From assembly GCA_907165135.1 (NCBI GenBank), contig OU015567.1, forward strand, positions 13,578,001 to 13,642,000: DNA of 64,000 nucleotides, given 5' to 3'. Origin of the DNA: Oikopleura dioica (Eukaryota; Animalia; Chordata). Shown here in pieces: positions 3,701 through 38,504 of the stretch. Each line of letters opens with the position of its first letter. Positions within the stretch are counted from its first letter, which is position 1. The notes under the pieces are model-generated. The model was not told the origin of the DNA and ran no database searches. It saw only the letters and a list, made by a program, of their open reading frames with translations. The position numbers and the translations under genes are program-made.

Positions 3701-5160
3701 TGAAAGTACTCACCTGGGAATGCCAATGAAAAATGTCTTTTTACTAGTTTTCTTCCTATTAGGCAAAAAACGAGTAAGGTTAGGGTTAGGGTTTGGTAGC
3801 CGATAAGCTAGTTGATGAACAAGGGGCTCTTACCACTTAACAATGTGGATGAACAAGGGGGACCTCCGACCGTATCATCTTTTTTCAGACGAACGGACTA
3901 TCTACCAGCTAATGCAAGCTGCATATGAATCTTTTGATGGTGATATGCATTCAAAGCTCTGTGGGAAAGTGTTCGATTTCCGCGAAGACGGAAAGTGCCA
4001 TTTAGGACGTTGACCTCCCGCGATACTGTCAAACCGGCTGGCAACTTTGAATAACTCGCGCCTTATCGATAAGCGCCGCGGCCCGCGCGCTCGTGTATTT
4101 CTACGTTCTTTATCTTTTTCTAACATTTTTGACTTGGAAGATCAAGGTGCTGCTTGTCGGAAGTGCGAGCAGCTTCCCAGGAGTGCTTTCGCTGTTTTCT
4201 AATATTTTTCATCGGATGATGGAGGTGGCGGTGGGGCGCGGTGGGAACCGATTCACCCCTGATAGTCACAGCGGGACATGAGAAAATCGAAAAGCGCTCC
4301 CAGATCAGACCTTACACCACCACCGCCGAACGGAACGCCAGTCAACACACTTCCGAAAACAGCGTTTACCTTATTGCCTAGTCCTGAGAACTCGGCCAGT
4401 CCTCTCACGGCAGAAACTTTTCAAATGATGCCTACTCGTTTTTTGAAAAATATGCTTCATCCCTCGAATCATGAAATTTGGACAGAATGATTCTCAAATA
4501 AAGCGGCGATAATTGCCGTTTCCTGGGCCGTTGCGGCGACATTTAGGCAATTTTTTCGTCAAAATGTCAAAAAAATCTTTTGAACCGGAGGGTCATCAAT
4601 CGAGCTCATACCCCCGGAATGACCTTTCTGAGGCCGTTTTGAAGCCTCCACTGAGTAAAGTTTGAAAAGTAGCTAACTCCGGTAAAGAGGGCCTTTGAAG
4701 GGCTTGCCAGCAGGGACCAGAAGCAGCCCTGTTGACAGAGCGCGTGCACGTGACCTCTTGAGGAAGACAAACCGTCACTTGACAAGATTTGAAGCCGGTC
4801 AAGAAGATTTATTGAGGGGAAGTGTATTTGGAGAATTACTTCATATCAGGACAAGGAGCCATTTTCGAATATCTGCGACAGGTGCATTTTACTGCTCGAA
4901 AATCAGGTGAAAATCATATTTACCCATTCGATATTAAATTGACATGGGAACGAGTTTTTTCGCGAAATCATTTCCGATCGGACAATCAGATGCGTGCCTG
5001 CGAGTGTGTGCCCTAGAGGACGAGTTTGTTAGCTGCCTAAAATTTTAATCCGAAGCAGCGATTTCCCAACGCGATAAAAAAAATAAATTGTCCGATGAAT
5101 CTGGGCTAATGCGGAGCTAGAAATCAGCTGTTATGTCAAAAAAGAAGAAGAGCGTGGGAA
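793..5160. promoter_or_regulatory. Cluster of CSL/Su(H)/RBPJ consensus sites (YGTGRGAA) in a gene-poor region upstream of the NRARP-like gene
   Basis: CGTGAGAA 793-800, TGTGGGAA 1651-1658, TTCTCACG 2379-2386, TTCCCACA 3346-3353, TGTGGGAA 3960-3967, CGTGGGAA 5153-5160; weaker GGTGGGAA at 4240. TCF-type CCTTTGATC at 8332-8340. No convincing spliced ORF in 300-9300. Confidence 0.5.
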
Positions 5161-18419: not shown

Positions 18420-19025
18420 TTAAACTTTTGAAGGTAAATGTCAAAAATTATTCATCAATTTATATTTTTGAGTTCCCGGGATTCCAGAGTATGCCCAAGT
18501 TGGGCGAGAGTCCTTTTGGGCGGGAGTCCACTTGGGCGAGAGTCCTCCACTCAAATAATGGGCATGGAATTGCCTTGTTGACTTCGTTGCAAAAACCCGC
18601 TGTTGGGGAAAAGGCCCGTTGAAGAAAATGACGATATTTGATGTTCAGGAATTTGCTCATTCTAGCTTCCAAGTTTGTAACAAAGAGGATATGTTATATC
18701 GTAAAAATCCCATCAAAAATCGACCTCCAAGTGAGTGATAGAAAATATCTGGCACGCCGTCGTAAATTTTTGTGCTCAACAATCACTTTTGTCATTTTAC
18801 GGTGTAAGGACTAGAGAATTTTATCGAAGTTCAAATTTTACTTTCTTCGGAATATCATTCTTGAACAAAAAATAGCGAGAGAGACTGATTGAAAGAGACA
18901 ATTTGATTCAATATTGACGCTTTTGTACTCGGAAATAGAGATCATTCGTTTTATGACATAAAAAGATTACAAAAACTCATTCTTAAAATTTTAAGGTGAC
19001 ACCGAAATCGAGTAAAGACGGCTAA

Positions 19026-22000
19026 ATGAAGCTTTTTGCATCGCTTTCAAGCTATGGTAAGTTTTCATAAATATAGTTGAAGCTTTAAATTGGTATTTTT
19101 CTCTAGCGATTGCTGCCAGTACCGATTTTTGGGTGAATAGCTACGATCAGGGTTCTAAACGGACATGTCCGTGTACGGATTTTATCCGTGTCTGTCCGGT
19201 CTTGTCCGTACGGACAGACTAGACTTTTAGTCTATTGGTTGAGGAAAAAACGGACAGCCTAGACCGGACTTTTGTCACGATCCGGACAAAATCCGTATTT
19301 GTCCGTATTTGTCCGTGAAATCCGGACAACCCCAGACTTTTGTCCGTGTCTGTAAAATCCGGGCAGAATCCGGAAAAATCCGTAAAAAACACGATTTGAG
19401 TTGGAATTCGTTTCAAAAAAGCCTGAACCAACGTCATTGTTTTATAAAATAAGCCAGGTTTTATATCAAATCAAGGTTTAATCAAGTTTCATATAAAAAT
19501 TTTTGACTTTTTGCCGGAAAATATCGATGATAACTTTTAATTGATATGTCTTTTTGATGGTGCGAAGACGGAACTTTGAGGACCGAGTTTCAAGGAAAAT
19601 TGGTTAAATTAAGAATTAGGTCCTTCATTATTCCGCTAATTCATTGCGAGTTCTAATTTGGGACTTTCAGCTCAGCATTTTCGGAAAAAGCCAGCTCAAC
19701 GTGTTGAGGGGTCAGCGGTCCGGCTAGCCCGCTCAGTCATTCAGCTCGATCATTTTGAGAGAACTCAGCTCAGACTAATGATTTTCTTCATAAAGCGAGC
19801 TAAGGTCAGCTTGGATAATACCAGCTGACATTAACTTCTCAATACACGGGCGCGCGACTAAGCGCTCAAAACACGGGGTCCAATTATTGGACCACAATGC
19901 ATTATCCAGCCCCGCGCGGCGCGCCAAATTCAGAGTGTGAAAAACAGCGCTCAGGACTTTTGGCTCTAATTGACGTTTCCGTCGGGTAAAAAAGCTCGTA
20001 AATGTATTGCTAGAAAGCTTGAACCCTCTTCTATAAAAATAAACAATTGTAAATCGAAAAATCCGTTCCGATTTTTCACCAGAGAGCGAAAGAGAAATCT
20101 GGCGCAAAACGCCACCACTTTTGAGTTTTCATTCGAAACTTCACAGAGTGGTTCGTTTTTGTCCTGTCAGCTCACATTTCAAAATTCAGGTCAAACAGAT
20201 AACTACAACGGGAAAATCAGGGGGTCAAAGTCGCCGTGGTCCAATGATTGGACCACGTGCATTGAGAAGTTAAGATAACGCAAGCTCAGCTAAGTTTCGC
20301 AAATTTTCATACAGCTTTGCTCAGCTTTGAGAAATTTTCTTTAAGGTCAGCTTCAAAAAGGTCCTAGCTAAAAGTCGCTGTATTGTCTGCCGAATTTATT
20401 TCTCAAAGATTTTTTTTGGTGTTGTCGGGTTTATTTCGATAAAAATTTGTTTTTTTACCCATGGAATTTTACGGACATTTACGGACAAGACTTTTTAGAC
20501 CAGACTTTTTCTTTTAAAAAAAATGTTTCCGGATTCTACGGACAAAAACGGACAAAACGGACATGTCCGGGACTAGACCGGACAAAAATCCGTTTTTTCG
20601 ATCCGGACACGGATAGACTAGACTTGGGATTTTGGCGGAGGACACGGACACGGACAGACTAGACTTTTAGATTTTGCCTCAAATTTAGAACCCTGGCTAC
20701 GATAACTCGGCTAGAATTCCATGTGCCGACTTGACCTCCTTGAAGAACGTCCTCCAAATCAGTTGGTTTAGATCTGATCTCACGGGCTCGTCGAAAACAG
20801 AAATCGCTGAACTTGCGAATGAAAATGGAATAATCAAAAACGCCGAAAAAGTACCAGGATACACAGTCGATGATACGGGTGCTTTAGTCATCTCAAAATC
20901 GGGCGACGATGATTTCTCCTTGAACGACATTGCTTTTTACGAATGCCAAGCAGATGTAAAAGATGAGAACGGAAAGATTACTCCTGCTGATATCAAAAGA
21001 AAACTTCTCGTTAATTTTATAATGGACAAAAACGATCTTGAGCCTGTTGTCAGAGGTAGAATCATAAAAATTTAATCATTTATAATCAGCTGATCATATA
21101 AAAGTCTCATAAAAACACCGCTCTAGATAAACGACTCGGCGAAGAAGACAAAAAAGAATACAAAGAAGGCATCAGATATGAAATCGCTGAGTGCGAATCG
21201 AAAGAAGCCGGCCCCGAAGCGCCAGTATTGATCTGGAGAGCGCTCGATTCTAGCGGCGATGAAATTTCCAACAGCAACGAATTCGGCTCTTGCAAGAGCA
21301 AACTTAAAACTCTCGATGACAGCAACTTTTGTGGAAAAACAAATGGTTCGGGCAGTTTTCTTTACGAGATTGTTTTACGATTTAGATTTCATCCACATGG
21401 ATAAACAAGATCAGCGAAAACTTCAAACGACGACGCTTTCTCTCGCATTTGACTCAACTCAAATTGAAGGCATTTCTTCCAGCTTTGACAAGGCGCATTT
21501 TCTGTGCGAAGCGCACTACAAAGAAGCCTGGAACGGCGAACTTGTCGATGTCATTAAAGCAAAACGATGGCCCGCAGATGACAATACCATCCGAGTCATC
21601 AGTATTTGAATGCCTCGTAAGCTCATTTTCATGGAATTTAAGGCCCCGTGCGTAATGTTGATATTCTCGTCAATGGTGCTCCAGTTAGCGCTGGAGTTCT
21701 TGACATGACGAATGGAAACCCATCTTTGGAGTGCAGCTCCGACGGATTTGACAACAAAGGCGCAAACGAAATCAACCCACGAGGAACCAGATCGAGAACA
21801 GGAGACAATATGAAATTCTCGTGTAAAGCAAGAAACTCACTGAACGAAGGCAAATGGGTCGAAAAGGAGTTTACCTTTACTGAAGCAAGTTTGTACATAA
21901 ATTTAAGAGCCCCGAGAATATGTTTTTAGCGCTACAAACACCGACCGCCGAATATTCTCATTTTGGTCTCGTGGCAAAAGTGTCAGCCGAAAGCACACCA

Positions 22001-23017
22001 AAAGATCCGGAAGTAGCAAATCTAAAATATGCAGTCTTCCAGTGCAAAGAAGGATTTATAGCGAAAGATGGTCGGGCTGTTTTCAAAATCCTCTCCGAAA
22101 AATGTATAGAGGCAAAGGCACTAACCGATGGGACAAAGCATCTTATCGAAAGAGAAATCATGCGAGAATATCCAATTGGCTTTGGTGTTGCGATGCTGGA
22201 AGTGATGGACGTAAATGGAAATACCGAAACTCTTTATAACTACGTCCCGATGAAATCTGCCAGAACCAACTACGCGAATAAAGAAGAAGAGCCTTTCCCA
22301 ATGCAGGCATGGTTTGATAGAATGACAGTTTCAGTGTCTCGAAGACTTCGATCGATTTCAAGAGATAGTATTGTCGCGATTTATTACAACGAAGATGAAC
22401 AGTCTATCGTTGATTTGTCGGGCGATGCAGTCATTGATGAGGAAAATAAAGATCAGTTTCATGTTGTCATGGAACCTACCCCAACAGAAAGTGGAAAATA
22501 CATCGTATGTTTTGACAGAAATCCTCGTGAAATTAAATTTCTTATAGCTCTGCTACGACTTCTCTAGAAAGATCGACCTCCAAGAACTCCAAGGACAGAC
22601 TTATGATTCGATCCGTGAAAGCTTACAAAGAGATCACGCTGATTTCTGCCGATTTTTCGTCAACAAAAGCTTCCCTTGGTGGATCATCCTTGTTGTCATC
22701 ATTGTTTTGATACTTATCGGTGCTCTGATTTTCTTCATTTTGAAGCGCAAAAAGGATGACAAAGAAGAAAATGGTACTTATATCAGACGAAAAATCGTAG
22801 AAACATTTCGTTTAGATTCGGGCGATATTGTCAGAGACCCTAAAACTGGCGGAAGCGTGTCAGGAGTCCAAACACAAGAAAGCGATGCTAGAGATGAGTT
22901 TGCAAAAGTTGTCGAGAATCAACCCGACGAAACTACAGTTTGTTGTGCGTATCACGTTCCCAGCTAATTTTAATTTAGCCACTGAGAAAAGAAGGCGAAG
23001 AGTCAACTGCAGTCTAA
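19026..23017 (+). CDS. Type I membrane Ig-superfamily protein (signal, about 3 Ig domains, extra ~200 aa domain, TM, cytoplasmic tail ending STAV); exon 2 interrupted by a hAT-like element
   Basis: Exon 1 19026-19056 and exon 2 from 19107 give MKLFASLSSYAIAASTDFWVNSYD, which continues after the insertion as NSARIPC..ISWF..ALVI..DIAFYEC. Further Ig motifs AECESK..PVLIW..FLCEAHY and LECSSDG..FSCKARNSL; TM FPWWIILVVIIVLILIGALIFFIL-KRKK; stop 23015-17. Confidence 0.75.
19148..20695. mobile_element. Non-autonomous hAT-like element (1548 bp) inside a coding exon
   Basis: 12-bp TIRs CAGGGTTCTAAA / TTTAGAACCCTG; 8-bp TSD GCTACGAT at 19140-47 and 20696-703; subterminal TGTCCG/CGGACA arrays; internal GCTCAGC-rich nested segment. 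Confidence 0.92.
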
Positions 23018-23482
23018 ATAAAGCCAAATTTACCTAATTCAAATAAATTGATGTCTTCCATTTTTAATCATTTGTGAAACGCTGCATCTTTTATCTAATA
23101 AAAATTCAAACAAACCTATGAATATAAAAGTTGAATAATCAAGTCTAAGGTCATAAAAACGCAACAAAAGAGTTGTTATTGTTGATCCTCAAACCGGACA
23201 CACAGACGCTTTTTGCTCTCGGTCTTTTGTTTGAACTTCGGATCGTTAAAGTTTAAAAAAAAACTAAAATCAACTTTGGAAGAATTTTCCTTTTGCAAAA
23301 GTCAGAGAAAAGCTCATCCCTGAAATTTTTTATTAGAGTCCGCGGGGCAAGGCGGCTCAACGCAGGTTCTGGATGGTCATAATATGAAAACCCAGGCCGG
23401 CCATATCGTACATTTTTGTAAATTCTAGATCGCTAAACACCCTTTTTTTATTTATGCGTTAACAGAGAAATATTGGAAGAAG

Positions 23483-25479
23483 ATGAATCCTCTTGCTGCT
23501 ATTTTGTTGAAAAACTGGTTTTTATGTGGAATTGTGTTATTTATTCTTTTGGCCTGGGCTGACCCTGATATTGGCAAAAAGGAAAATTCAAAAATAATTC
23601 ATCAAATATCAATAACCGTGAAAAGGGTTAAGAACAGATTTTGAATTTTGCAAGGGTGGTCCTTTGCATCCTGAAGTCACGGTTAAATATTTCGCCGTTG
23701 GTTTTATTTTCTTCAATTCGGGACTGTCTCTGAAATCAGAAGAACTGAAACGAGCAGTTATGCAAGTCAAACTGCATACTTTTGTACAGGTATAATCTTG
23801 ACAAGATCGATGAAGTTTTACTCAATTTTTAGTCATTTACGCTTTTGTTTGTTCCGATCTTCATGTACTTCTTCAAAGGATTTCTCTCGAAAGTTACCTC
23901 GTTGGACCCTTGGCTCTTATCAGGACTGACTGTGGTTTCATGTATGCCACCTCCGGTTTCTTCCGCAGTTATTCTCACAAAAGCAGTTGGTGGTAACGAG
24001 GCTGCTGCTATTTTTAATTCTGCCTTCGGCTCCTTCTTGGTAAGAAATGATATTTTCTGTTTCGAATATTTTGAGCGTAGAAAATGAAAAATCTTTTTTT
24101 ATTGCAGGAATAATCACTTATATGTACAGGAAATTTCTTGCAGATGTGACAAAGAGATCCTCTTTGATATTTACATGGAGAATAATATTAGATGGCAATT
24201 AGCTCGTATTCGAGATGCTCTAGTAATTGTTAGTTTTTATAATTAAACAGCCTTACCTGATGCAGAGTCTCGAGTTGACGGTCTATATTTCTCTGATGCT
24301 CTAGCGATTGCTGAGTGTAAGTGTGTTGAACTGTATTGCTCGGTTGAACGACAGAGGTCGTGCCGATTGGGTGAGGCGGAGACTGTCTTGGCTCAGCCGG
24401 AGTCAAGACTCGCCGATGAACACGGATTGGCACGTTTGCACTCATTGATCGTAGGGGTACTCGGGTTGTGAGCCGAATGCGCTTTGGCTGCCGATTCATT
24501 CTGAAATAATAATTATTAGTTACTGTTCCGCAGGAAGGTGAATGTCGAGGGTGTGAATTGAACTCGAGGAGAAGGAGCCGCAGGCTCGGCGCTGCCAACT
24601 GAGCTAGTCAAGCGTTCAGCCGGGCGTGTTGTTTCGCGGGTTATAAATCGATTTTCTATTTCACGCCGACCAATTAGCGTGCTGCCTGACGAGCTTACGG
24701 GCGCTCCTTTTTTTGCTGAGGGCTCAAATATTATTCTTCAATTGTTTGCATCTTTGGCTGCCAAAGTTTGGCACGCAAAAATTGAAAGAATGTTTTTTGC
24801 AATATTCACAACACATATTTAGGGAATTGTCGCTACTCCACTTCTTTTGTTGACTTTCATGGGCGAATCTGCAGCGATGAGTTTCACTTCAATTTTTGCC
24901 CAGCTTTCTGTCACCGTCGTCATCCCATTAATTTGTGGTCAGATCTTACGCCAATTTGTCAAAGAGTGGCTCGAAGTAAGAAAGCCACCTTTTGGGGAGA
25001 TGAGCAGTTTTATGTTGCTGATGATTATTTACACCACTTTCTGCGATACATTTCTGGTAATTTTCAAATTGTATCATTCAGAATATACATTTTATTCAGT
25101 CCCCTCATCTGAAAATCGATCCTTACTCTTTGATCACTATCGCCGTCATCATCTTCTGTCTCCAAGTCTCCTTTATTTCCCTCACCTTCTGGCTTTCTCA
25201 GCGACAATGCTTTGGCTTCACGGCCAAAGATACTGTAGCAATCATGTTCACTGCTACTCACAAGGTAAATCTTTCAAAAAATAGGATCATCATTTTTAGT
25301 CCCTCACGCTTGGAATTCCCATGTTGAAAATCATCTACAGCGGCTCCGATCATTTGAGTCTCCTTTCGATCCCTCTTCTTTGCTATCATCCGACTCAAAT
25401 TCTTCTTGGCGGCTGTTTGGTGCCTTCCGTCCAGACCTGGATGAACTCGAAGCTTCGGCAAGTTGCTCCCGACATTTAA
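23483..25479 (+). CDS. SLC10A7: Sodium/bile acid cotransporter 7
   Basis: [98 protein letters not shown]; GA-AG intron 23582-23654. Confidence 0.93.
24199..24499 (-). CDS. Possible small basic orphan gene nested antisense in an SLC10A7 intron (87 aa)
   Basis: TATTTCAG acceptor just before ATG 24499; 81-codon exon [24 protein letters not shown] ending in CAG|GTAAGG; 37-nt intron 24220-24256; short last exon. Confidence 0.4.
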
Positions 25480-25735
25480 ACTCATTTACGCTAATTTATT
25501 GTAACAGCATTTACTCGTGCTAGAAGCGTATCCTCAATTAGCCTTTCTAGTGTTTTAGCTTTATAGCATTTTAAACTTATTTATTATAAACCTTATTTCT
25601 TTGCAGAAGAGCCTTTATTACAAGACCTGAAACTCGACAAATCCACAAAAAGTACCTATGCCCTTTGTGACAACCTCCTGTGTGCAATACGAATCTATAC
25701 AAATACGATATTCTAATAAACTATTTAAAAATGAT

Positions 25736-26973
25736 CTATTTGATGTGCACAGAAAACATAGAATCAGTATCGCCTTCCGAAATCCAGCGAGTTCGTCTTT
25801 TTGGAGTTCCTCCATCCTCGTCTAAAACATTTTCATTGCATTTCAATCATTTAAAAACGAGCTACCTTGATGCATAACATGATGCGTAAGTCTGCTTACA
25901 AATCCCTCTGCCAGCTCTTTCAAATCCTTTGGCAAAACAAGTTCTCGCTGGAGATCGAAGTTTTTATCTTCTACGAATTTGTACATGAACACATATCTGT
26001 AGAGCAAGCTGACGAGAAACATTTCAATTACAACAAGTGCGTTATGCAAAATAGTGCCGCGCCCAGCTGCTGTATGAGGATAGACGCAGGAGTAATTGAA
26101 GAATGATATAATAATTGGCTGGATGTTTACACTGAAATACACGTAAAAATTAACCTAAGTAATAAACATACGAAATGAGAGTTAGTCGAAAGAGCATGAA
26201 TTTAAATTTGATATGAAAATCGGCCATGCAAAAGTTCAAGTTTTCCGAGAGCACAATGAGACAGAAGACAGCCAGTCCAGTTGATACGAGTCCACCAAAG
26301 AGCGACGAAATACTACCAGTGTCAACAGTCCAGATTCCCTCTGCGACGAAGCAAGCATTTGCGATGATAAACGCACAGCGGACAAAGACGCATTGCAGGG
26401 ATCCCCAGTAGAGTTGAGAAAACCACTCGCGAGAAGGAGTTATTCTGAAGCACTCAAGAATACTTGTATTTGCTTGCTATTTACCGAGGTATACAAAAGA
26501 AAAATCTCCATAGCCAAATTCTCACCGACCATTTTGTCTTTTTCGCTTGATTGAGAAAGTGGTCAAAGCTGTCGAAATAGTCCAAAATCAAGGAGAAAAG
26601 CGCATTGATTGACAGACCAAAGGTGAAATTCAAAATGAATGTCATAAAAAGCGCGATCCTTGGAGAGAGCAAAATCATCAGTGAGCACAAGCAACACACC
26701 GGTGGTGTTCTCAAGATTGCGTCAATGTAGCCTGCTCTAATTGGCTTCTTTTTGTACAAGCCCATTGTGTAGTTGACGAAGTAGTGGATGGAGTAGCAGT
26801 TGATGCAGGTTGAAACTGAGATCAGAACTAGAACAAGCATTCCAACATTTTCTAGCGTTTCAGCTGCTGCTACTGTCATCGCTGACGATGGAGGTCCAAG
26901 GGCACAGGAATCCACTAAAACTCAAGATTGTCAACTTTATGTTTGAGTACATACCCGCTGGTAGAAGTTCCAT
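25736..26973 (-). CDS. SLC51A: Organic solute transporter alpha-like (SLC51A/TMEM184 family)
   Basis: PPVCCLCSLMILLSPRIALFM..SLILDYF and CVYPHTAAGRGTILHNALVVIEMFLVSL resemble OST-alpha motifs. Start MELLPA (26973) is spliced to the 26915 exon; the upstream frame is open, so the N-terminus may be longer. Confidence 0.7.
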
Positions 26974-27119
26974 GGCCCGAACTCGGGGATCTCTTGAGGG
27001 GGATGACTTCCCAAGAAAAATTTCATTGTACTTATCAGGGGTCAGTTCTAAAGCTTCACCCATTGACAATGGGCCATTGTTCAAGTGGAATGCTTGTGCT
27101 GTCCTGGTAGAAGCCCTAA

Positions 27120-27700
27120 TCATTCTCTCTGGATATAAAAAATGAATGAATATAAAAATTCCGTCAAATTCAAGTTCAAATAAAATACCAAAAAAGACGC
27201 CTGTCTGACCCTGCCTCACCAGTATCCCCCATTCTCTGAAATCCATTTCCTCGTGTTTTCCGTTTTTATGATGTCTCGGAAGCTCAAACCACAAAATTAA
27301 AAAATTTATCACCAGATGCTCTCACGCTGGAAGTCGCTATGTTCAACCACTGTGAGATGAATTGAAACGCACTAAACATACGACCATTTGATATTTGCGG
27401 GTCCTGGCGTTCACACCGGTGGTCAGGAAGTTTTTACAGTTTTATTTTATGAATTCCAGGCGCCAGGGTTACATTTTTGATGTGCAATTTTGACCCTGGA
27501 TTTCAAAATAATAAAAAGAAATGAATTTTTTTGAGATTGTCGAAGTGATTTTGACATAATAACTGACGCTAACTGCACGGGACTCTTACCACAGATCATA
27601 GTTTCGTCAGCATGTTCATCACCTTCCCTACTGCAGTCGATTGCCATTTGCAGGTAGAGATCGCTCAGACTGCATTTTAACGAGCTCACACCACATGCTA
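27120..27700 (-). CDS. Unidentified spliced coding segments upstream of the OST-alpha-like gene
   Basis: Exon-like pieces MAIDCSREGDEHADETMIC|GSKLHIKNVTLAPGIHKINCKNFLTTGVNARTRKYQMV| joined by GT-AG junctions; continuation unresolved. Confidence 0.3.
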
Positions 27701-28419
27701 AGCTGTCATAGATCAGAAAACTATATCGTATCGAAAAGGAGTAAATCAAGTACAGCAACCGTACTTATCATGTCTACCACAGGGTCGATCTGAATTCACC
27801 TTTTTCAGCTACTTTCAACATAGAAAGTGACCCTTTAAATTTATATCAGTTCGATCAGCAGCCCATTATTATGCAATTAATTAGTATCTAAGTCTTTTCT
27901 TCCGGCCACCTGCGAGAAGCGAATCCAAATAAAACTTAGCCGGTGTACATTTCAACACATCACAACAGCGGTTTGACAAGCGTTTATGCTTAGATAGGGG
28001 CATTTCTCACTGAGGAGGGGTTATAAATTACTAACAGATGTCACACCATCACGGCCATCTCCGCGCTAAGCTATCTTCTTTTTCCGCTGCTTTAAGCTTT
28101 TTTATCATTACTGCCTTTTAAGGTGTTTTATTATGGAACAAGACCAAGTTTACTGAAGCTCTATGGAAACAATAAAAAACGACATCGTTTTTGCGTGATT
28201 TTATGCAGACTTTTACGGTTTAAAAATGCTTTTATCTGGTGATTCAAGTCATTGTACGAAATAAGGGAGATTCGATGTCTCAACTTTATGAAATGTGAAA
28301 TCCAAGAAAATTATTTTAGCGTGAAAATTTTTTTACTCGTAAGAACTAATCTTCATAAATGTCACAGATATCTAAGAACACGATGGTTTTCACAAGCAAA
28401 GCTTAAGTTATAAAATCAA

Positions 28420-31400
28420 CTCTTGATGGGGTCAACGCTTGTGGTAGCGTGGTGACGAAGGCGCAGAAGGGTTTCTTAGCACTCACCGCTGACGAGACTC
28501 AGAATACTTTTGCAGAACTTCGTTGAGCGAAGTCCCAGTTTCAAGCATTTTTTAATTGAAGAGTACTAGCTGAGCTAGATCTCAGGTTCATAAAAATGGA
28601 ACCTCAGTGGAAGATTTCCGCAGAAGGCGTTGGAAAAGAGGCAAAGTTTGAGTTTCCCGGAAAGGAGGGCATCGAAGCTCAATGGTTTTTAGGTGAAGGC
28701 TTATTTTTTGCCAGAAAAGAAAAAGGTTTTTAGATGACCAGAGAATCGAAGAAAACGATATATTTTCTTTTGGATCGACCGATGGAATGAACTGGGTGAA
28801 AATGACCAGTGTTTCTGAGGCAGATGTCGGAAAGAAAATCGCGCTCGTTCTTGGAGACGATCGTCAGGAAGTCACGATTGAGTTCAAAGATAAACCAGCT
28901 GAAGAACCTCAAGAAGCACAAGAGCCAGTTCCGGAATCAGAAAAATCTGCAGAGCCCGAAAAAGTTCCTGAAGCGGAAAAAACACCAGAGCCAGCATCGA
29001 TGGAGGAAAAACCAAAAGAAAAGGCTCCTGAACCAGCCAAGCCGGCACCAACACCCCCAACAGACAAGCCCCTTGAAACAGTGAAAGAAGATGAAGCTCT
29101 CGAAACAGTAAGTACTCATACAAATTTCACCGTTTATCTGCTCTAGAAACCTAAATGGGTACCACCTCCTGGTGTTGACGTCAGCAGGCCGTACAAAGAT
29201 CCCAAGACTGCTAAACTGATAGATCCGGCGACAGGCGAAGAGATTGATATTGATTTGACAGACAAGAAGGCAGAAAAGGCCGCTCTTAAGATTCAGGTTT
29301 TCTTTAAGATTCTAGGTCTTTTTTCTTCATATTCAGGGCTTATTTCGCGGCCATTTGACTAGAAAGCTGGGTAAAATGAAGATCCTCGCCATGATGGGTG
29401 TTGGAGTTCAGAAGATCAGGAAAAACCTGATGACTCTCGAAATCGTCAAGCCACAGCCTACTGTTACTGTCAAACCCGCTGGAGTCAAAACGAAATGGTT
29501 TCGAGATCCCAATCACGGATACTGGGTTCAGCCAGGGGTCTGGATTTTGGCCAAAAATGAAAAGCGAAAGCGAAGCGAAAGCGAAAATTTTTCAAAAATT
29601 TTAAGCGAAAGCGAAGCGAAGCGAATCAAAATTTCGTGAGCGAAAGCGAAGCGAAGCGAAAAATTTTCCTAAAAAGCGAAAAAAAGCGAAAATTTTCCAG
29701 GAATATATAACCTTTGAAAAAGTGCCCATTTCATGTATGATTTCATTTTAATTAGTTTTTCGGACATTCGGACGATGGTCTCAGTTTGCCTGCGTCGCCG
29801 TTTACCCAAGTCGCCGTTTCCCAAAATCGTCGTTTACCTTACATTGGAAAACATAGATCTTGGGCAAACGGCGATGTGAAAAAAATTATATAGATTGATA
29901 ATTAAACATTGTTTGGCTTCTCCAACGTCAATCCTGGCTTCATCAATGTCAATCCTGGCTTCACATACTTCAATCATGTATTGTTCAACATCATCCATAT
30001 TTTATCAATGATGGCTTATTTATCGTCAAGTCTGGTTTCAACATCTTCAATTCTGTTTTTACCGACTTCAATCATGGGCCATTCATGGCTTTTCCAATGT
30101 CAATCCCGGCTTCTCCAATGTCAAATTGACATTGTCAATCCAAACTTGAAAAAGCCATGATCGACAAGTGAGAAGCCGGAATTGACGTCCGAGAGGCTAG
30201 GATTGAAAATGGTGACGCCCGGATCGGTGTTAAAGAAGCCGGGATTGATGCTGGTTGATGCCAAGGTTGATATGATGATTTATATCATATAAATTATATG
30301 ACAACCAGGATCGACGTCTGAAAAGCCAGGATCGAAGTTTTTGAAGCCGGGATTGAAAATGGTGATGTCAGGATTGATTGTGGGGAGGCCAATATATGTA
30401 GTCATAAGATCAATCGATTTAAATTATAATACAGTTAATTATGGAATTTTTGGACATTTTATGTCCCAAGATTTTCGCAAAAATGTCCAAAAATTTGATA
30501 CACGCGGCCAAAAAAAATGTCCCATCCAAATCTCCATCATTCTTTGTTTAATCCTTCTTCTAAAGACAAAAAATGTTTTAGGGGTACGAGATCAACCTTC
30601 AATCTTATCTTTCTCAAAAGTAAAAATTTAAGATAAAGAAAAGTAAGATTTTTAATAATAAAAAACTTCATATCTGGCAAAAAAAAACCGAAAATTTAAA
30701 AATTTGGCGCGGAAAATGTCCAAAAATTTGATACGGGCACTTTTGAAAAGTGTCCCAAGAAAACCCCTTAAAATAGCAAAAATGTCCAAAAATTTGATGT
30801 CCGAAAATTCCATAAAAAACTGTACATCGCCGTTTGTCCAATACGCCGATTCCTCATGTTGGGCAAACAGAGATCTTGGGCAAACAGCGACTCAAGAAAA
30901 TGAAGACCACTCCATTCGGACTCCCTCTCCGATTTTTCAAATTGCAAATTTTCCGAGGTTTGTGAGCTGAGGAGGCTGTGTGGCTCAGCTCAGGTCAATC
31001 ATTTTATAATATTGACTGCCTAGCTCAAATTAACTGAATGAATTTGAAGAGTCAGCTCAGCTCAATGATTATTTGTGAAGGACAGCTCAGCTCAGCGCAG
31101 CTCACAAAATTGGCTACTTTGAAAACAGTAAAACTTCTCTCAGGTCAGCTTTTACATCAGCTTTTTACTCCGCTTTGTGTTGGTGCTAAAAACTCACAGT
31201 GGCCAGGTACGGGCAAGGTATCAAGCTGTGCAAATAGGATGCAAGGGGCTCACCGACATGTGCTCCCACTGCGAAGTCCCGCAGAGACTTTTCCTAGCAC
31301 CAACTCTGAGCAAGGCTCGGTGTGAGATGGATTGAGCCAATAAATAGGGGGAACTGAGCTGCAAAATCGGATCAAGCTCAGCCGGTTAAAAGTGAAGATA

Positions 31401-32349
31401 TAAAAGAATAAAGATTGAAATTTTATGAAATCTCGCCATATATGGTGATTTTTTCGGAGATTTCGATTATGAACCCCAAAATGATCTTCATAAAAAATTA
31501 AGAGCCTCGGTTTGGCAAGAATATAAAAAATATAAGAAACGGTATCGCTATCTATAATCTGCTCTTTTTGCCTTGACACATTTTTCTCGACTATATTTTG
31601 AGCAGACAGTACCAATTGGTACCCGAACCTTCTTGTCTAAGGCAGGCTTAGGCGAGCTTTGGTAAGATAATATTATTTTCGGCCTCTGAATCAAAATCTA
31701 CAAAAAAAATTACGAGGTAATTTAAAAGGTAATTTATTTTATGAAATTCCAATTTTTTACTCTTTTATAATTTCACTTTTGAGCTTATCCTCGGCTTAGC
31801 TTGCTGATTTTGAAGCCATCTCACACCGAGCGTTGCTCGAAATTGGTGCTAGGACCAGTCTCTGCAGGACATCGCAGCAGGTTGCGCGTGTCGGTGGGCC
31901 CGTTGCATCCTATTTACACAGCTTGACACCTGCCTGTACTTGGCCACTGCGAGTTTTTAGCACCAACACAAAGCGGAGAACCCCTGCCAATTTAGCTCAT
32001 TCAGCAAAATTTCCACTCGAGTTTAAGCTAAAGCTAAATAAAAAAGGATAAATTTTCAATTCTTGGAAAGATTACTTTTGAGCGAAATTTTCGCGAAAAT
32101 TTTTGGTAAAAAGCGAAAGCGAAGCGAAGCGAATTGAAATAACAAAAAGCGAAAGCGAAGCGAAGCGAATTCGCTTCGCTTCGCTTCGCTTCGCTCATGA
32201 GCGAATTCGCAAAGCGAATCCAGACCCCTGGTTCAGCTCGAAGTTAAAACTCGTAAGAACTTTATTCTAAGATTTTGGACTGATCAATATTTTCAGAAGA
32301 CACCTGGGGTGAGGTCGGAAAATTCCGTCGACGCTCAATCTTTGAATAA
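28420..32349 (+). CDS. Intracellular Ig-like + Pro/Glu/Lys-rich + IQ-motif protein; late exon interrupted by a hAT-like element; 5' start unresolved
   Basis: Ig-like AQWFL.D..IEE and GVNACGSV; PEVK-like EPQEAQEPVPESEK..; EEIDIDLTDKKAEKAALKIQ|GLFRGHLTRK (neurogranin/SPA17-type IQ). The empty site reads YWVQLEVKT|QDTWGEVGKFRRRSIFE-stop (32347-49). Confidence 0.65.
29794..30891. repeat. Nested foldback unit with palindromic ends and an inverted 21-bp minisatellite
   Basis: Ends GTCGCCGTTTACCCAAG..TTGGGCAAACGGCGATG (29794-29876) and CATCGCCGTTTGTCCAA..CTTGGGCAAACAGCGAC (30825-30891); 21-bp units TTCTCCAACGTCAATCCTGGC from 29918 and reverse-complement units ~30168-30390; AAAATGTCCAAAAATTTGAT repeats 30480-30800. 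Confidence 0.7.
31168..31978. repeat. Long diverged inverted repeat (~163 bp arms)
   Basis: 31168-31330 is the reverse complement of 31816-31978 with scattered mismatches (roughly 80% by eye), flanked by GCTCAGCT-rich sequence. Confidence 0.8.
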
Positions 32350-32463
32350 GTACTGGCCTTTAATTCGATATTTTCTGTGACGTCTGTACAGTTGTAATAA
32401 ATAGAAAGCATTGTGGGTGATACGAGGTGATAATTACGTGCACTGAAAGCTTTGATCAATCGC

Positions 32464-35289
32464 TTAAAGTAAGAATCGATAAGCTTCAGGCCTTAGACCT
32501 CGCTTCTTCGTTCGTTTTCGCTCGATCAGGCGCACTTGTGAACGCTGTCGTAGGGAAGGAATGTCAGATGCTTTAAATGTTTCGCGTTGTTCGATCGGCA
32601 GTGGCAGTTGTAAATTCGGAACAGCTCGGAACGGCACTTTTGTGAATTTTTGTCCGCTTCCGAGCACCATAAAAGGGAAGGATGTTTGTGTTATTACTCT
32701 GGAGTTCTCTTCTTCTAGCGCAGCCTAAAAGACAATAATAAAAGTTGAAAGCTGGAAGTAAGAGTTTAGAAAAAACGAGGAAATTGCTGCAACGCAATTT
32801 CGTATTCGCGATTCAAACAAGGTTATTTATTGCGTTTAGTAGTTCTCGTTTCAAGCCTAAGGCGACCGCCCTAATCGCTTGTAGATCTTTCTCACAAATC
32901 ACCTTTTTAGCAACAGGGCATTCGAGATTGATGCAAGCACGCGTGATCCCGTATCTCCAGTTGTGAACAACTGCACCAGGATGAAATCCGACAGGAGACG
33001 GGGATCGGTAGTCTTGTAAAGTTTCGAATATTTTGGCGTTTTTGTTGAAGAAGCCTTATTTTGACTCTTTTCCTGAAATAGTTCCAGGCGTGCAATGCAG
33101 TGTCCGATAGACCTGAGTCTGTAGCCCCAGCTCAGAAATAAATCGCATTCGTCTATCCAAACTCCTGTTCCTTTCAATTTCATCACTCTCCTAAAACCTC
33201 TTTGAACTCAATCCTTGTTGATTTCAAAGTTAATTTACGCGATGACACGTTTTATCTGAGCGACTCCCGCATACGATTGTGTCATCAACTCTCTATTACC
33301 TTTATTGGATAAGAAATGCATTCCTCGACAAAATTGAAGCGTTTCCTCGCTGAGCGTACCGGTATTCTTGAGAGAGATCGAGGGCGAGCTCGTGGTCTTC
33401 TTTTGAGTTTTTCTTCTGACGATCTTGCGTCGGCTGATTTTTTAGATCTGTTTGAAAGCAACAAGGATGCTTCTGTTTCTTAGGGTTCGAGACTTGAAGT
33501 GAATGTCCATTCATTAGTCTTGAACCTTTTCCTTTATTCAACTCTTCTCGTCGCTGCTTTGCCATTTCTTCCCTCGCTTTCGCTACAGCTGTAGTTTGAT
33601 ACAGCGACCCGAGAGTATTCAAGAACTTTGCATACGGATCTTCGGCATCAGGAGATAATGACAGAGGGTAGGCTCTTCTGAATCCACTTTTATCAGGGTT
33701 ATATTTTGTCTTTTGCCCAAAATTAAACTTGTATGCGAAAAAATCAGAGTATACATTTACAGCTCTTAAATAATTGCTAATCACCCTAGCCAAGATGCTT
33801 AGATTCCCAAACGGCATCAGCGAGAGCACGTTTCGCGAGTTTCTCAGAACGATCCATGTCAGGTTTGTGTCGTTCTTTCTTTGAAAGACGATCTTGAGAC
33901 TTTTTCTTCTCCGCATTCAGCGCGACGACACGATCAGAAGCTTTTACGTGAATAAGTTTGAACGAGTCTTCGAGGAGTTGTTCTTTGATTTCTTTGTCCA
34001 TCGGACTGTCAGTGTGAAAGGAAGGAGTGTGGTTGACTTCGATGACCCAAGGTTTCAGGCGCTTGTCGAGCATAATGTCGAATCCAAGAATTTCAAAGCA
34101 TGCTGATTTTTCCGAATGATGGGCAAAGCATGTTCTGTAATTGTGCTGCAGCGTGTTTTGCGCTGATATTAATGTTTTAACAATAACATCGTCGATCTCT
34201 CTCCAGACTTGTCCAACATCGTGTCCGTTTTCCCTTAAAATAAGGTTGACTTTCATATTATTTTTGCTAAGTTACCTGAGCCATTCATTAATAGCAGCGA
34301 ATCTTCTTTTATGACCCTCGCTGTCATCGACAACAAAATTTTCTGACTCCTTGTTGATAGCATAGTTGGTCAGGTGCATCATGCTGTCAAGAGTTCCTCG
34401 ATTAACACAATCTGTCTGATAATTGACAAATACAAGCAGATAGAAAATTACTGCAATAATTTGGGAACACATTCCTGTCATCTATGTTACTGGTAGTGGG
34501 TTCTTTGTATGGCGTTGTGGCGAAACGAGCAAGTCCTTCGTGGAAAACATAAATTCTGAAAGGATCGCATGACGTGACCAGAACATATACGCGAAGATCA
34601 AATTTAAATCCATCGATCAGAAGTGGGTGAGCGAGATATTGTTGGACGACATAGCCTTGTCAGCGTTCTAGCAAGTGACTAGCAAGGATAAAGGTAGTTA
34701 TAGGGGGACCTAGAACGTTTCCTTCACTAGTTTTGACATCTTTATGAGGCTTCCGCGAGAGAAAGATCCCCCGGCCTTGGCATCCCCTTTGTGGCTTGCA
34801 AATAAATATCTTTTCTTTCTTCCGTCCGCTCAAGAATGTCAGAAAATCAGCCTGATCTGCCGGAAACGTCCACGTCCGCGGAAAGATCTGATAGTCTTTC
34901 CCAAACTGTTTGTACATCCGCGTCAGATTTCGCGAAAGAAGATCTTTGCGAGAAATTTCGTTCATGCCAGGAAAATGGTTGATTCTTTGGTAGCTCTTCA
35001 TTTTCAAGCATCTTTCGATTCCCACTGATTGATCGTTCCAAAACACTGTCCATTCCTCATCTTCATCCATTTCCGTAAATCCTTGCCGCTAAAAAAAATT
35101 TCCGTTGCCAAGCCAACGAAATGGAAATTATCTCACCTTCGACGCTCTTTTCACCGAATCGTAGTAACAATTTACTAAGCAAATGCCGGGTTTGTTCATT
35201 TTCCGAGGTTTTCTCTTTTTCAATGCGTTTTTTCGCTGCTCTTTTTTCTTCGATAAGGTAATTGGGGTTTCCCCGTCGGTCTCGGCCAT
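32464..35289 (-). CDS. TTLL6: Tubulin polyglutamylase, TTLL6/TTLL13-like; 3' exons uncertain
   Basis: WTVFWNDQSV..QRINHFPGMNEISRKDLLSRNL, FICKP..GCQGRGIFL, MHLTNYAINK, CFEILGFDIMLD..LKPWVIEVNHTPSFHTD, ESDEIER..RR..ISELG; ATG 35289. Confidence 0.88.
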
Positions 35290-35809
35290 GATTATTTTCT
35301 TTCAATTTTGACGCTCTTTATTGTCTGAGGATTTGTTTAATTTTTCTCTAGGGGCCCCAACTGAGTAACTCCAGAGCTTCCTGGTTGTTCTCTTGCCAGC
35401 TCAAACACTCAAGAATTTCTTCTCCTCGATCATTTAATTTGAAGAAAAAAATAGATAAAGTAATTGACGCAAAGCTGTTCTAATGCGACGAAAAATCTCA
35501 ACAGCAGGAGAGCGTGTTCACGAGCGAATGTTTCCTTTGTGTCCGGTCTATTCTCACCAGCATTTTTCGTTTCTTTCATCAGGACAAACAACAAATACGA
35601 TAGGGCTTGAAAGAGCCTGTCAATCAGATCTAACCAGACTGTGAATCTGCAGAATCAAGAAATAAAACTTGAAATAAAGAGAAAATATATCCGATAGAGG
35701 ATAAAAAATGATATCAACAAGGAGTAAACGACAATATTATGTTTATTTACAACATTTAAATAAAAATATTCGCAGTGATATAAACGTAGTGGTAACCAAA
35801 TGAAATTCG

Positions 35810-38504
35810 CTAAGAATCCCGATGAAGAAACTTTAGCTTGAAGGGTTCTGGTGCTAAAACTGATGACATGTTTTTGTCGATCTTTGGTAGGGATGCACCA
35901 TCTTCAAACTCGATTTTGAAGTTGAGGATGATTTCAGCAGCGAAGTAAAAATTTTCTGTTTTCGCTATTTGTTGTCCTTAATTGCGTGTGAGGCTGAACT
36001 TGTTTTAAGCGATTCAGTACCAATACAGTTTCGTTTCCCAACTCCGAACGAGCAAACCTTGTGATCGTGAACAAACTCCCCATTTCTCAAAAATCTTTCA
36101 GGAAGAAATTCGTCTGGATTTTTGAAGTTTTCTAAAAAGTAAACTCGTTAGTGCAAATAATTATAAACTTACTTGGATCACGCATAACACTCGCCAAAGA
36201 TCCTAAAAAGAAATCGCCCTTCTTGAACCGATAACCATCAATTTCGACATCTTCCGCCACTTGATGCGGTAAAGAGTCAGCCACTGGGAAAACTCGTCTA
36301 TTTTCTAGCATCACTGATGACAGCAAAGGACAGTCTTTTTGGTCAAACGATCCTTTATTACTAAAAAGTTTTGGATGAAGATTGGTTGGGATTAACTGAA
36401 CGTACCTTTTGGCAGTCGAGATTTCGTCATAAAGTCGATTTTGTAAAGAGGGTCGAAGAGCAAGCTGGATAAGAAGCCATCGCATTGTATTCGCTAAATA
36501 GGAATCAATTTTACTGCTGACGTGTAAGAACCGATTGGAAATTAACGATCCGAAACGTGAACCATCTGCGGTCACCCAAATTTTGCCCGGACATAAAGCC
36601 GCCTGTGAAACTTAGTTATTCGTAAGTCATAAAAGGCATTGACAATGGGCTTATTTGAGTTTTCCGGTCGTTGATTGACTCTTATTTCTTACCTATTGTG
36701 TCCGTTCCGCCGATGTACAGAGAAACTAAAGTAAATCCGATCGTATGGTAGCCAATTGTTGAGTCCGTTCGAGTCAAGTCAAGAAGAAAATCCATATAGT
36801 CGCGGAAGTTTTCTTCATCAAGGCCTTTCCTATGCTCTGCAACGGTTTGATGAGAATCCAAAAGAAGGATCTTACCTTTGATATACGAGTAAATGTAAGG
36901 CTGAAATTTCAGATAAAGCAATTCGCACATTTCTTTGTACTTCGGGAAGATCTTCATCTTTAGCTTCCTGAACCAGTGCATTCTGATGAGCCATTTAGGA
37001 GTTATTGATGCGGTCATCTTCGCCTGAACATAGCCCATCAGATTTCTCAGCAAATCTTTCGTCATTTTGGAAACTGTTTGAAAGTTTTCATCGTCTATTT
37101 TGTAGTGAACGCCAAGAAGAAAATTGGTGAGAACATTGATTGAGCCGTTGAGAAGGTATGGAAGGGGGTCCACAGGTTTGCCATCGAGGGTCGATAGTTG
37201 GGAACAGAGCTGTCTAGCGTTGTCTTTGACTGATTCCTGTAATTTATCAGAGCCATGAAGTTTCAGGACAGCATGGTACCAGTTAGAGCGTAATTTACGA
37301 AAAGAGTCGCTATGAGAATTCGACATTTCAGGTCCAGAACACACCTTCTAAAGCAGATATATCTATAGAATTCCATTCCTATACGGTCCATTGCCCACTC
37401 CATAGAGGCCTTCTATTAGCTCTGTGTCGCCAGTTGCATCTCTGAAGAATTTTTCAAGATTGAAGTCTTGTCTAATCAGCTTTTCTTCAAGTTCAAGCCT
37501 ATCATTGTGGAGTCGGTCCGAAACTTTGTGGCTACCAAAGATCTTCTTCATAAGTTCATAGTCAGTGATAATGATAGGGCCAATTGGTAGGCCTAGAATC
37601 TTCGACTTGTAAATCTTGGGCAACTTGTCATCTCTCAAATGCGGGTACCCTCCCAATCCCTGGGCAAAATCGAAAACCCAGGGATTCGGAGGGTCAAATC
37701 CGAAATGTTCTAGAAATGTCTTTCAGCTGTTTTACAGCAGATTCATTAATTAGTTTTCTCTAATAATTGGTTAGTGTTGAAAGAAAAACAACTTTAGCAA
37801 ACGCATTATATTTTTATATTAGTATATATTTATAAGCATCCACTATTGGTTAAATTAAAATAATTTTTAAGCCTTAAATCTTCATTTATATCGTCTGATA
37901 GTAATTTCGAAAAAAATGTCTGTTGGAAAATTACTTTCTGCTTTCATTCAATTTTCTTCTTTTAAGGGTTGGCGTTTAATCAAATATGACATACAAGTTA
38001 TCTTCTAAAGTGCTTACGTTTTTAGTATATTTTGAAAAATGATAAATAAAAGATTTTTTTGATCTTTTGTAGGGGTTTTCTAGAACATCACCCTCCGAAT
38101 CCCTGGACTTTTCCCAAAAACCCAGGGATTCGGAGGGTGCCCAGGGATTCGGAGGGTCACCCCTCAAATGATCTTGAATAAACTCAAAATTAGTCTCATC
38201 CAGGTTTACGTTCTCGTAAAAAAAAGTTAACAAGTATGCTAAAAAACCCTCTTCGTTTTCGAAATATATTGAATTATCATCAATTTCTTTGATTGTAATT
38301 TGAAATTTCTAAGTTGTCTTTAAGACCTTGAGAGGTTATGAAAAGGCCTTGAACTTCAAGGTCGCCATTGTAAACCGTTGCCTTTTTATCGAAAGGCCAT
38401 TCAAACACAGGAATTTTTCGTGACCTCTGGCCTTTCATGCGTTTAATAACTGCGATACTGGTAAGGACGAAAAGTACTGCGATGAGGATCTCATCATAGA
38501 TCAT
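35810..38504 (-). CDS. Cytochrome P450, CYP2-clan-like; exon 2 interrupted by a hAT-like element
   Basis: N-terminal TM anchor; I-helix GGTDT; K-helix ENRR; NPDEFLPERF; heme motif FGVGKRNCIG; stop 35810-12. Confidence 0.9.
37642..38162. mobile_element. Non-autonomous hAT-like MITE (521 bp) inside CYP exon 2
   Basis: Imperfect 23-bp TIRs CGGGTACCCTCCCAATCCCTGGG / CCCAGGGATTCGGAGGGTCACCC; 8-bp TSD CTCAAATG at 37634-41 and 38163-70; the ORF track shows the duplicated HLR on both sides (QDHLRGD.. / YPHLRDD..). Confidence 0.85.

Follow-up and report, generated by a model that had tools for sequence, protein, structure and literature searches.

Introns born from transposons, or introners, are known from Micromonas, dinoflagellates, other eukaryotes and the tunicate Styela clava (PMC9860276, PMC12130899, PMC11282704). 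Within a 64,000-nucleotide stretch of Oikopleura dioica DNA (the window) we find three elements, E1, E2 and E3, that resemble introners in being DNA transposons with TIRs and TSDs, in lying within coding sequence, and in differing in presence or absence among individuals. As in introners, the element could supply one splice site and either the element or its duplicated target the second, which here is a potential of the sequence. Whereas introners form many near-identical copies shown to be spliced, each family here has one copy in the window and the splices are candidates read from sequence; E1 and E2 also measure 1.5–2.7 kb rather than being short. O. dioica was not found among the named introner carriers in the introner literature that we searched.

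Another larvacean, Fritillaria borealis, has non-canonical introns derived from MITEs (Henriet et al. 2019, as summarized in PMC11282704). According to that summary, TIRs and TSDs are found in the Fritillaria introns, and the spliceosome that excises them accepts unusual ends; O. dioica belongs to the same larvacean class. As summarized there, the Fritillaria introns are fixed and numerous with mostly AG-AC or AG-AT ends, in contrast to the polymorphic GT-AG and GG-AG candidates described here. A search of the E1–E3 junctions for AG-AC or AG-AT ends preceded by an exonic TAC found none. Ac/Ds insertions in maize exons usually cause mutant alleles, and certain of these insertions are partially removed by splicing. 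E1–E3 share with hAT alleles of this type the 8-bp TSD, the CAGGG-type termini (E1 and E2), the exonic position and the possibility of imprecise splicing at cryptic sites close to the ends; they differ in that three occur in 19 kb of a wild-derived animal genome, in constrained genes.

Three transposons interrupt coding exons

The three elements are mutually unrelated, and 3/3 have TIRs and a perfect 8-bp TSD, which is single-copy in the empty alleles. They are non-autonomous DNA transposons of hAT type, E3 being putatively assigned from TSD length only. The usual hAT termini are short TIRs with YARNG-type ends (CAGGG/TAGGG), a pattern that E1 (CAGGGTTCTAAA) and E2 (CAGGGGTCTGGATT) match and from which E3 (CGGGTA.. 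/ GGGTGA..) deviates. The internal ORFs of the elements gave no Pfam match. A within-window search found no sequence common to the three elements or shared with the remaining window, and further copies of the E2 family are present in contigs of a DNA run (X1). De novo scans of the window for more TIR elements with 8-bp TSDs recovered only E1 and E2, the remaining matches being repeat artefacts; E3 escaped these scans because its TIRs are imperfect. When JGI metagenome contigs were scanned with an 18-mer of the E3 TIR, no E3-family copies were found, and the 12 single matches, in unrelated contigs, were judged to be chance because a true family copy would hold the motif several times.

The original prediction had placed three hAT-like MITEs inside coding exons at these positions. 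TIRs, TSDs and ORFs that are continuous in the empty alleles bear out the positions and the exonic context, with one correction: E2 starts at 29533 as proposed, but its last base is 32229, the TSD beginning at 32230. The label of hAT-like MITE needed more revision, since only E3 is miniature (521 bp) and its termini (CGGGT/GGGTG) are off the hAT pattern, while E1 (1.5 kb) and the composite E2 (2.7 kb), both non-autonomous, are larger.

E1 is inserted in exon 2 of an Ig-like receptor gene, directly past the signal peptide.

19027–19147, + strand: 5' part of the Ig-like gene, with start codon, exon 1, intron and exon 2 left of E1 (sequence reading)
19140–19147, + strand: left TSD of E1 (GCTACGAT); single copy, GCTACGAC, in the empty allele L003
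19148–20695, no strand: E1, 1548-bp non-autonomous hAT-type element with a perfect 12-bp TIR, CAGGGTTCTAAA
19151–20688, + strand: candidate GG-AG intron taking out E1, leaving +18 nt (QNPGYD added)
20696–20703, + strand: right TSD of E1, copy of GCTACGAT
20704–21039, + strand: rest of exon 2, with a weak V-set match; pN/pS 0.05 versus the empty allele L003

Exon 1 of this gene spans 19027–19057 and is followed by a GTAAGT intron at 19058–19107; the ORF runs uninterrupted through the empty allele (P0006/L003). No in-frame GT-AG pair was found in E1. The canonical GT at 19152, joined to the acceptor of the candidate GG-AG intron, leaves +19 nt and a frameshift.

E2 lies in a gene for an IQ protein, 22 codons upstream of the stop.

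29337–29532, + strand: IQ exon up to the insertion point of E2, ending in the left TSD GGTTCAGC at 29525–29532; pN/pS 0.14–0.15
29533–32229, no strand: E2, 2697-bp composite hAT-type element with TIR CAGGGGTCTGGATT and GCGAA-repeat subtermini
29538–32236, + strand: candidate GT-AG intron taking out E2, leaving +6 nt (PG added)
32230–32237, + strand: right TSD of E2; the empty joint in X1 is 29524 to 32230, with 8 shared letters
32238–32349, + strand: 3' end of the IQ gene (sequence reading)

The candidate donor is GGG/GTCTGG in the TIR and the candidate acceptor GGTTCAG/ in the TSD, with a predicted joint of ...GTTCAGCCAGGG/CTCGAAG... Beyond E2 the gene continues with a 15-nt exon remainder (32238–32252), a 44-nt GTAAGA...TTTTCAG intron (32253–32296) and a last exon with its TAA stop at 32347–32349. 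The C-terminal tail ...DTWGEVGKFRRRSIFE, encoded downstream of E2, is kept in two relatives (P0012 and P0014). E2 holds nested inverted-repeat elements, for example at 31168–31978, and these nested parts are skipped by X1 contigs.

E3 is inserted in a cytochrome P450 gene on the opposite strand.

37310–37378, − strand: P450 intron 2, 69 nt, for which GA-AG ends are required to join GPY/SDSF
37632–38160, − strand: candidate GT-AG intron taking out E3, with 0 aa change (AGA to AGG, both Arg)
37634–37641, − strand: TSD of E3, downstream copy on the coding strand (CATTTGAG; window-strand TSD CTCAAATG)
37642–38162, no strand: E3, 521-bp MITE in exon 2 of the P450 gene, with an 8-bp TSD
38163–38170, − strand: TSD of E3, upstream copy on the coding strand, copy of CTCAAATG

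The imperfect TIRs of E3 are made of five copies of ACCCTCCGAATCCCTGGG, and its RNA is predicted to form a long terminal hairpin (z = −8.4, −160 kcal/mol) with donor and acceptor buried inside. An alternative acceptor after 37650 leaves +18 nt with both sites wholly within the element. The internal GT...AG pair of E3 is in frame whatever the target and is present in one orientation only. Non-canonical splicing is already at work in this gene, whose intron 2 must be GA-AG; this intron is missing from a genomic contig of a related larvacean (L002). Related larvacean ORFs (P0016 and P0017) are unbroken at the E3 site.

Empty alleles and constraint on the host genes

Exact empty sites were found in marine-metagenome contigs for E1 (L003), E2 (L004 and L005) and E3 (L001). 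Of the wild contigs recovered, 5/5 are empty and 0/5 are filled. The host ORFs are continuous in these contigs for all three genes. X1, which has the same species label as the window, also carries the empty E2 site. Over 18900–23000 the share of sampled words present in X1 is 0.62, the same value as the proportion of this interval outside E1, and X1 may therefore lack E1 as well. Since exact empty sites occur in wild contigs and, for E2, in X1, the three insertions are young presence/absence polymorphisms.

Between insertion and empty haplotypes pN/pS is 0.14 for the P450 gene, 0.05 for the Ig-like gene and 0.14–0.15 for the IQ gene, and the P450 haplotypes show no indels over the entire gene. 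The host genes are under purifying selection and functional in the species. The empty alleles in the wild contigs and X1 are as compatible with new introns as with haplotype-specific knockouts.

Transcript and protein searches

E2 was chosen for RNA read mapping for its closeness to the 3' end of the host gene, an advantage with oligo-dT and single-cell libraries. The IQ gene had zero RNA depth in each of three runs, two bulk and one single-cell (X14, X15 and X11). Protein collections were searched with the exon pieces that flank each element, and representatives were searched exhaustively with the P450 exon; both gave genomic ORFs only, and these served as empty sites. The searches returned no transcript-derived or annotated full-length protein across any junction, and for E1 and E3 neither a transcript nor a protein spanning it. 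An exact look-up of a nearby 337-aa ORF gave no record.

In-frame splice potential and chance

The frame-restoring donor and AG that had been proposed for each element (+6, +2 and 0 aa) exist in the sequence, and stop-free in-frame splice options are present for every element. By sequence potential, E2 has a GT in its TIR and an AG in its TSD, E3 has GT and AG in its TIRs or in the TSD plus flank, and E1 is in frame only by GG-AG. We simulated 5000 random insertions per element and orientation. Under a permissive rule that accepts any G[ACGT] donor near the start and any AG near the end, an in-frame pair was present in all 5000, and with GT-AG only it was present in 0.37–0.48 of random insertions. 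Frame-restoring pairs therefore do not discriminate, because under the permissive rule they are always present, and in-frame splice potential at the three sites is no better than chance (5000/5000 random insertions positive).

Intrinsic pairs that leave 18 nt at any target were found in E1 (3+7+8 = 18) and E3 (2+8+8 = 18). The 3+7+8 geometry had been attributed to E1 and E2 in common; it holds for E1 (18 nt) and fails for E2 (17 nt). By qualitative judgement the candidate sites are weak compared with the GTAAG...TTTYAG introns of the host genes themselves. A species splice-site model built in two versions from ORF pairs of the window was dropped, having converged on false introns or coding-like motifs.

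Possible new introns or disrupted alleles

Three unrelated non-autonomous transposons recently and independently entered coding exons of three constrained genes in one Okinawan O. dioica haplotype. Our best guess, which we regard as having about an even chance of being right, is that at least E2 and E3 are spliced, wholly or partly, as newborn introns. An introner reading of the insertions is plausible. The donor would be a GT inside the terminal repeat and the acceptor an AG from either the opposite repeat or the TSD, and splicing would add 2 aa for E2 and 0 or 6 aa for E3; E1 would be removed in frame only via a non-canonical GG-AG splice. This would be the ordinary transposon-to-intron route, eased by the tolerance of the species for G[ACG]-AG introns; about 11% of introns in the Okinawa assembly are non-canonical (PMC8008620). 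Against splicing stand the weak sites, the frameshifting GT of E1, the E3 hairpin, the length of E2 (2.7 kb, where the median intron of the genome is 49 bp; PMC8008620), the zero RNA depth of the IQ gene and the five empty wild contigs. A broader claim, which we hold to be rather unlikely, is that we see chordate introns at the moment of their birth, with unrelated, polymorphic hAT-type elements spliced in frame from the mRNAs of constrained genes, E1 and E3 leaving 18 nt anywhere, and hAT elements an ongoing source of the rapid intron gain of Oikopleura and of its G[ACG]-AG introns.

The insertions could instead be recent, rare, recessive and haplotype-specific loss-of-function or hypomorphic alleles, unspliced or spliced out of frame, in the sequenced animal or the laboratory line, and to this we give a substantial chance that falls somewhat short of even. 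With read-through, the Ig-like receptor and the P450 would be cut short, and the IQ protein would end in other residues than its conserved C-terminus. Every wild contig is empty, as is X1 at E2, and exact look-ups of ORFs running from exon into element, whether as filled alleles or as retained transcripts, gave no record of a filled allele elsewhere. The in-frame splice potential is expected by chance, the sites are weak, the canonical GT of E1 shifts the frame and the sites of E3 are hidden by a hairpin. The assembly also derives from a single laboratory-cultured male with high heterozygosity (~3.6%; PMC8008620). However, three knockouts of constrained genes (pN/pS 0.05–0.15) within 19 kb would be a heavy load, and 3/3 insertions lie where a few added residues are likely harmless.

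We consider it improbable that a specialised introner system is involved, with hAT termini selected so that TIR and 8-bp TSD always yield a frame-preserving intron that allows persistence in exons. The intrinsic pairs of E1 and E3, leaving exactly 18 nt at any target, suggest such a system, but chance puts one in three intrinsic pairs in frame, E2 is off the geometry with its 17 nt, and the E1 pair requires a GG donor adjoining a competing GT. Each family has a single copy in the window, the JGI metagenome matches are at chance level, and we observe no sign of a dedicated intron-generating system. An assembly artefact that misplaced repeat sequence inside genes is very hard to credit: nothing specific favours it beyond an X1 word share over 18900–23000 compatible with E1 absence, and it is opposed by perfect TSDs around exact empty-site breakpoints in three independent cases and by element-internal pieces, identical to the window, at single-copy depth in X1 contigs.

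Implications

Transposon-born introns as such are already known, including those of the larvacean Fritillaria, and intron gain in animals is still mostly inferred from old, degraded cases. Here filled and exactly empty alleles are both extant today for three genes in 19 kb. If the elements are unspliced, the window shows a very compact genome bearing a notable burden of exonic knockouts; if they are spliced, the high intron turnover of Oikopleura and its 11% of non-canonical introns would be linked to hAT activity.

Insertion sites and empty alleles

Coding exons of three genes in the window are split by transposon insertions, designated E1, E2 and E3.

Exonic insertions and their empty sites
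E1, 19148-20695, Ig-like receptor gene: starts CAGGGTTCTAAA and ends in its exact reverse complement, with GCTACGAT on each flank; empty site in contig L003 (ERZ17095642)
E2, 29533-32229, IQ protein gene: starts CAGGGGTCTGGATT and ends ...AATCCAGACCCCT, flanked by GGTTCAGC; empty site in contigs L004 (Tara Oceans assembly) and L005
E3, 37642-38162, cytochrome P450 gene: flanked by CTCAAATG, with imperfect arms made up from five copies of ACCCTCCGAATCCCTGGG; empty site in contig L001 (ERZ17293588)

E1 lies directly after the signal peptide (...STDFWVNSYD / NSARIPCADL...), in exon 2 of a gene whose product is a type-I membrane protein that matches V-set weakly. E2 occupies the penultimate exon of the IQ-motif protein, 22 codons 5' of the stop (...HGYWVQ / LEVKT...), and E3 is in exon 2 of the minus-strand P450 gene (Pfam p450; ...EFIQDHLR / DDKLPKIY...). 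When the exon pieces beside the elements were used as queries in protein searches, marine-metagenome ORFs were found that run uninterrupted across all three sites. Alignments of the fetched contigs to the window are interrupted precisely where the elements end, and the 8-bp target is single-copy in the contigs, which are genomic DNA because they contain introns. E1, E2 and E3 thus arose by true transposition and are polymorphic for presence or absence. The exon insertions noted originally are sound, and the case for them is strengthened by an empty-site allele for each. Flank identity between contigs and window is 90-97%, except on the 5' side of E1, where it falls to 83%.

E2 was previously taken to end at 32230; the true end is 32229 and the extra G belongs to the target duplication. 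Inverted-repeat elements are nested inside E2, making it a composite. The description of all three as MITEs holds for E3, which is small enough, and fails for E1 and E2 on size. No Pfam matches were found in the internal ORFs of the three elements, and comparison within the window found no sequence common to them or shared between them and the rest of the window.

Constraint on the host genes

Comparison of the insertion haplotype with empty haplotypes gave pN/pS values of 0.14 for three P450 exon blocks, 0.05 for the Ig-like exon and 0.14-0.15 for the IQ exon; all three host genes are constrained. The P450 gene aligns without gaps to L001 across 1977 nt. Read-through of E1 or E3 meets a stop in 20-60 codons, and both alleles should be null if unspliced. 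The IQ C-terminal motif 3' of E2 (TWGEVGKFRRR...) recurs in P0014, a 63%-identical relative, so that a conserved portion of the protein would be lost on read-through of E2. A tubulin-tyrosine-ligase (TTL) family gene (33302-35300, minus strand; Pfam TTL, two exon blocks), situated between those for the IQ protein and the P450, is apparently intact and insertion-free.

Frame-restoring splice sites are expected by chance

We enumerated all donor/acceptor pairs close to the ends of each element. The three frame-restoring splices proposed originally are all present and their arithmetic is correct.

Candidate splices
E1: GG-AG, skips 19151-20688, adds 18 nt
E2: GT-AG, skips 29538-32236, adds 6 nt
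E3: GT-AG, skips 37632-38160, minus strand, residues unchanged (AGA to AGG, both Arg)

Under a permissive rule (any G[ACGT] donor near the element start and any AG near the end), in-frame pairs number 3 for E1, 13 for E2 and 11 for E3. As a chance control, each element was placed at 5000 random window positions per orientation; no placement lacked an in-frame pair under this rule, and restriction to GT-AG left one in 37-48%. The in-frame splice potential of E1-E3 is real, yet it is not evidence of splicing, and the frame-restoring sites carry no weight in support of introns.

No in-frame GT-AG pair was found near the ends of E1, where the canonical GT 1 base downstream of the GG donor adds 19 nt with the same acceptor, a frameshift. 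The E1 pair CAG/GG...TTTAG/AACCCTG always leaves 3+7+8 = 18 nt; the same geometry had been assigned to E2, wrongly, since there it leaves 17 nt. The host genes' own introns (GTAAGT...TCTCTAG; GTAAGA...TTTTCAG) have visibly stronger sites than the candidates, and the modelled RNA fold of E3 (-160.5 kcal/mol, z = -8.4) places both of its candidate sites within a long terminal stem.

Reads at E2 and the IQ gene

Reads from four runs were mapped on 28600-32600: the best DNA run (X1, labelled as the same species) and three RNA runs, of which two were bulk oligo-dT and one was single-cell. RNA depth over the IQ gene exons was essentially zero in 3/3 RNA runs. RNA reads do pile up on the GCGAA-repeat subtermini of E2, and their loose ends on both sides indicate that they come from other loci. 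These microsatellite-like GCGAA/GCGAAA repeats (29538-29671 and 32084-32217) are abundant in polyA RNA; such reads carry unrelated flanks, so related repeats are transcribed at other loci, and some reads join both arms on opposite strands. The sole non-repeat place with RNA reads in 28600-32600 is a second, small pile at 32352-32485 (RNA runs X14 and X15). It may represent a divergent allele, or the 3' UTR of an adjacent gene on the minus strand. A>T at 32432 is common to all of its reads, and in a subset of them changes also cluster at 32394-32410.

One X1 contig contains the exact empty E2 joint (29524 to 32230, skipping 2705, with 8 shared letters; depth 20.9). X1 holds two E2-flank haplotypes, one identical to the window (depth 9.5) and the other with 31 differences (depth 11), and it contains window-identical E2-internal pieces at depth 15-21. 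Other X1 contigs join 30429 to 30823 and 31156 to 31985, skipping the nested inverted-repeat elements 30430-30822 and 31157-31984, so other alleles, or sites elsewhere, must carry the E2 backbone without them. X1 also has E2-family members that are shorter, their two GCGAA-rich ends being joined directly. The X1 word share for 18900-23000 is 0.62, the non-E1 fraction of this stretch, a weak hint that X1 may be without E1.

Possible splicing or loss of function

At least partial in-frame splicing of the inserted elements has, in our judgement, about an even chance, and is more likely for E2 and E3 than for E1. The host gene of E3 already uses a non-canonical, lineage-specific intron: P450 intron 2 (37310-37378, minus strand, 69 nt) joins GPY/SDSF only as GA-AG (..TAT AG/GAATGG...CTCATAG/C GAC..) and is absent from L002, a genomic contig of a related larvacean in which GPYSDSF is continuous. 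In the Okinawa assembly, 11% of introns are non-GT/AG and the median intron is 49 bp (PMC8008620). That assembly derives from a single male with heterozygosity of ~3.6% (PMC8008620). That the insertions are plain loss-of-function alleles on the sequenced haplotype is a serious possibility that falls somewhat short of even. A selected 'introner' design in any form, itself a subset of the splicing reading, is improbable. A review (PMC11282704) covers introners in other organisms as well as non-canonical introns derived from MITEs in Fritillaria borealis. Styela clava is a listed introner carrier (PMC12130899), and the two introner surveys searched, PMC12130899 among them, make no mention of O. 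dioica as one.

E3 is the exceptional case. In its actual orientation an in-frame GT-AG pair was present in all random placements, since the pair GG/GTGACC...GGGAG/GGTACCCG comes from its own ends and, once the duplication is counted, leaves 2+8+8 = 18 nt at any target; in the opposite orientation just 48% of random insertions had such a pair. Two intrinsic in-frame pairs (E1 and E3) prove nothing, because the chance in-frame rate is one in three. If the E3 family really makes introns, an orientation bias is predicted for its insertions.
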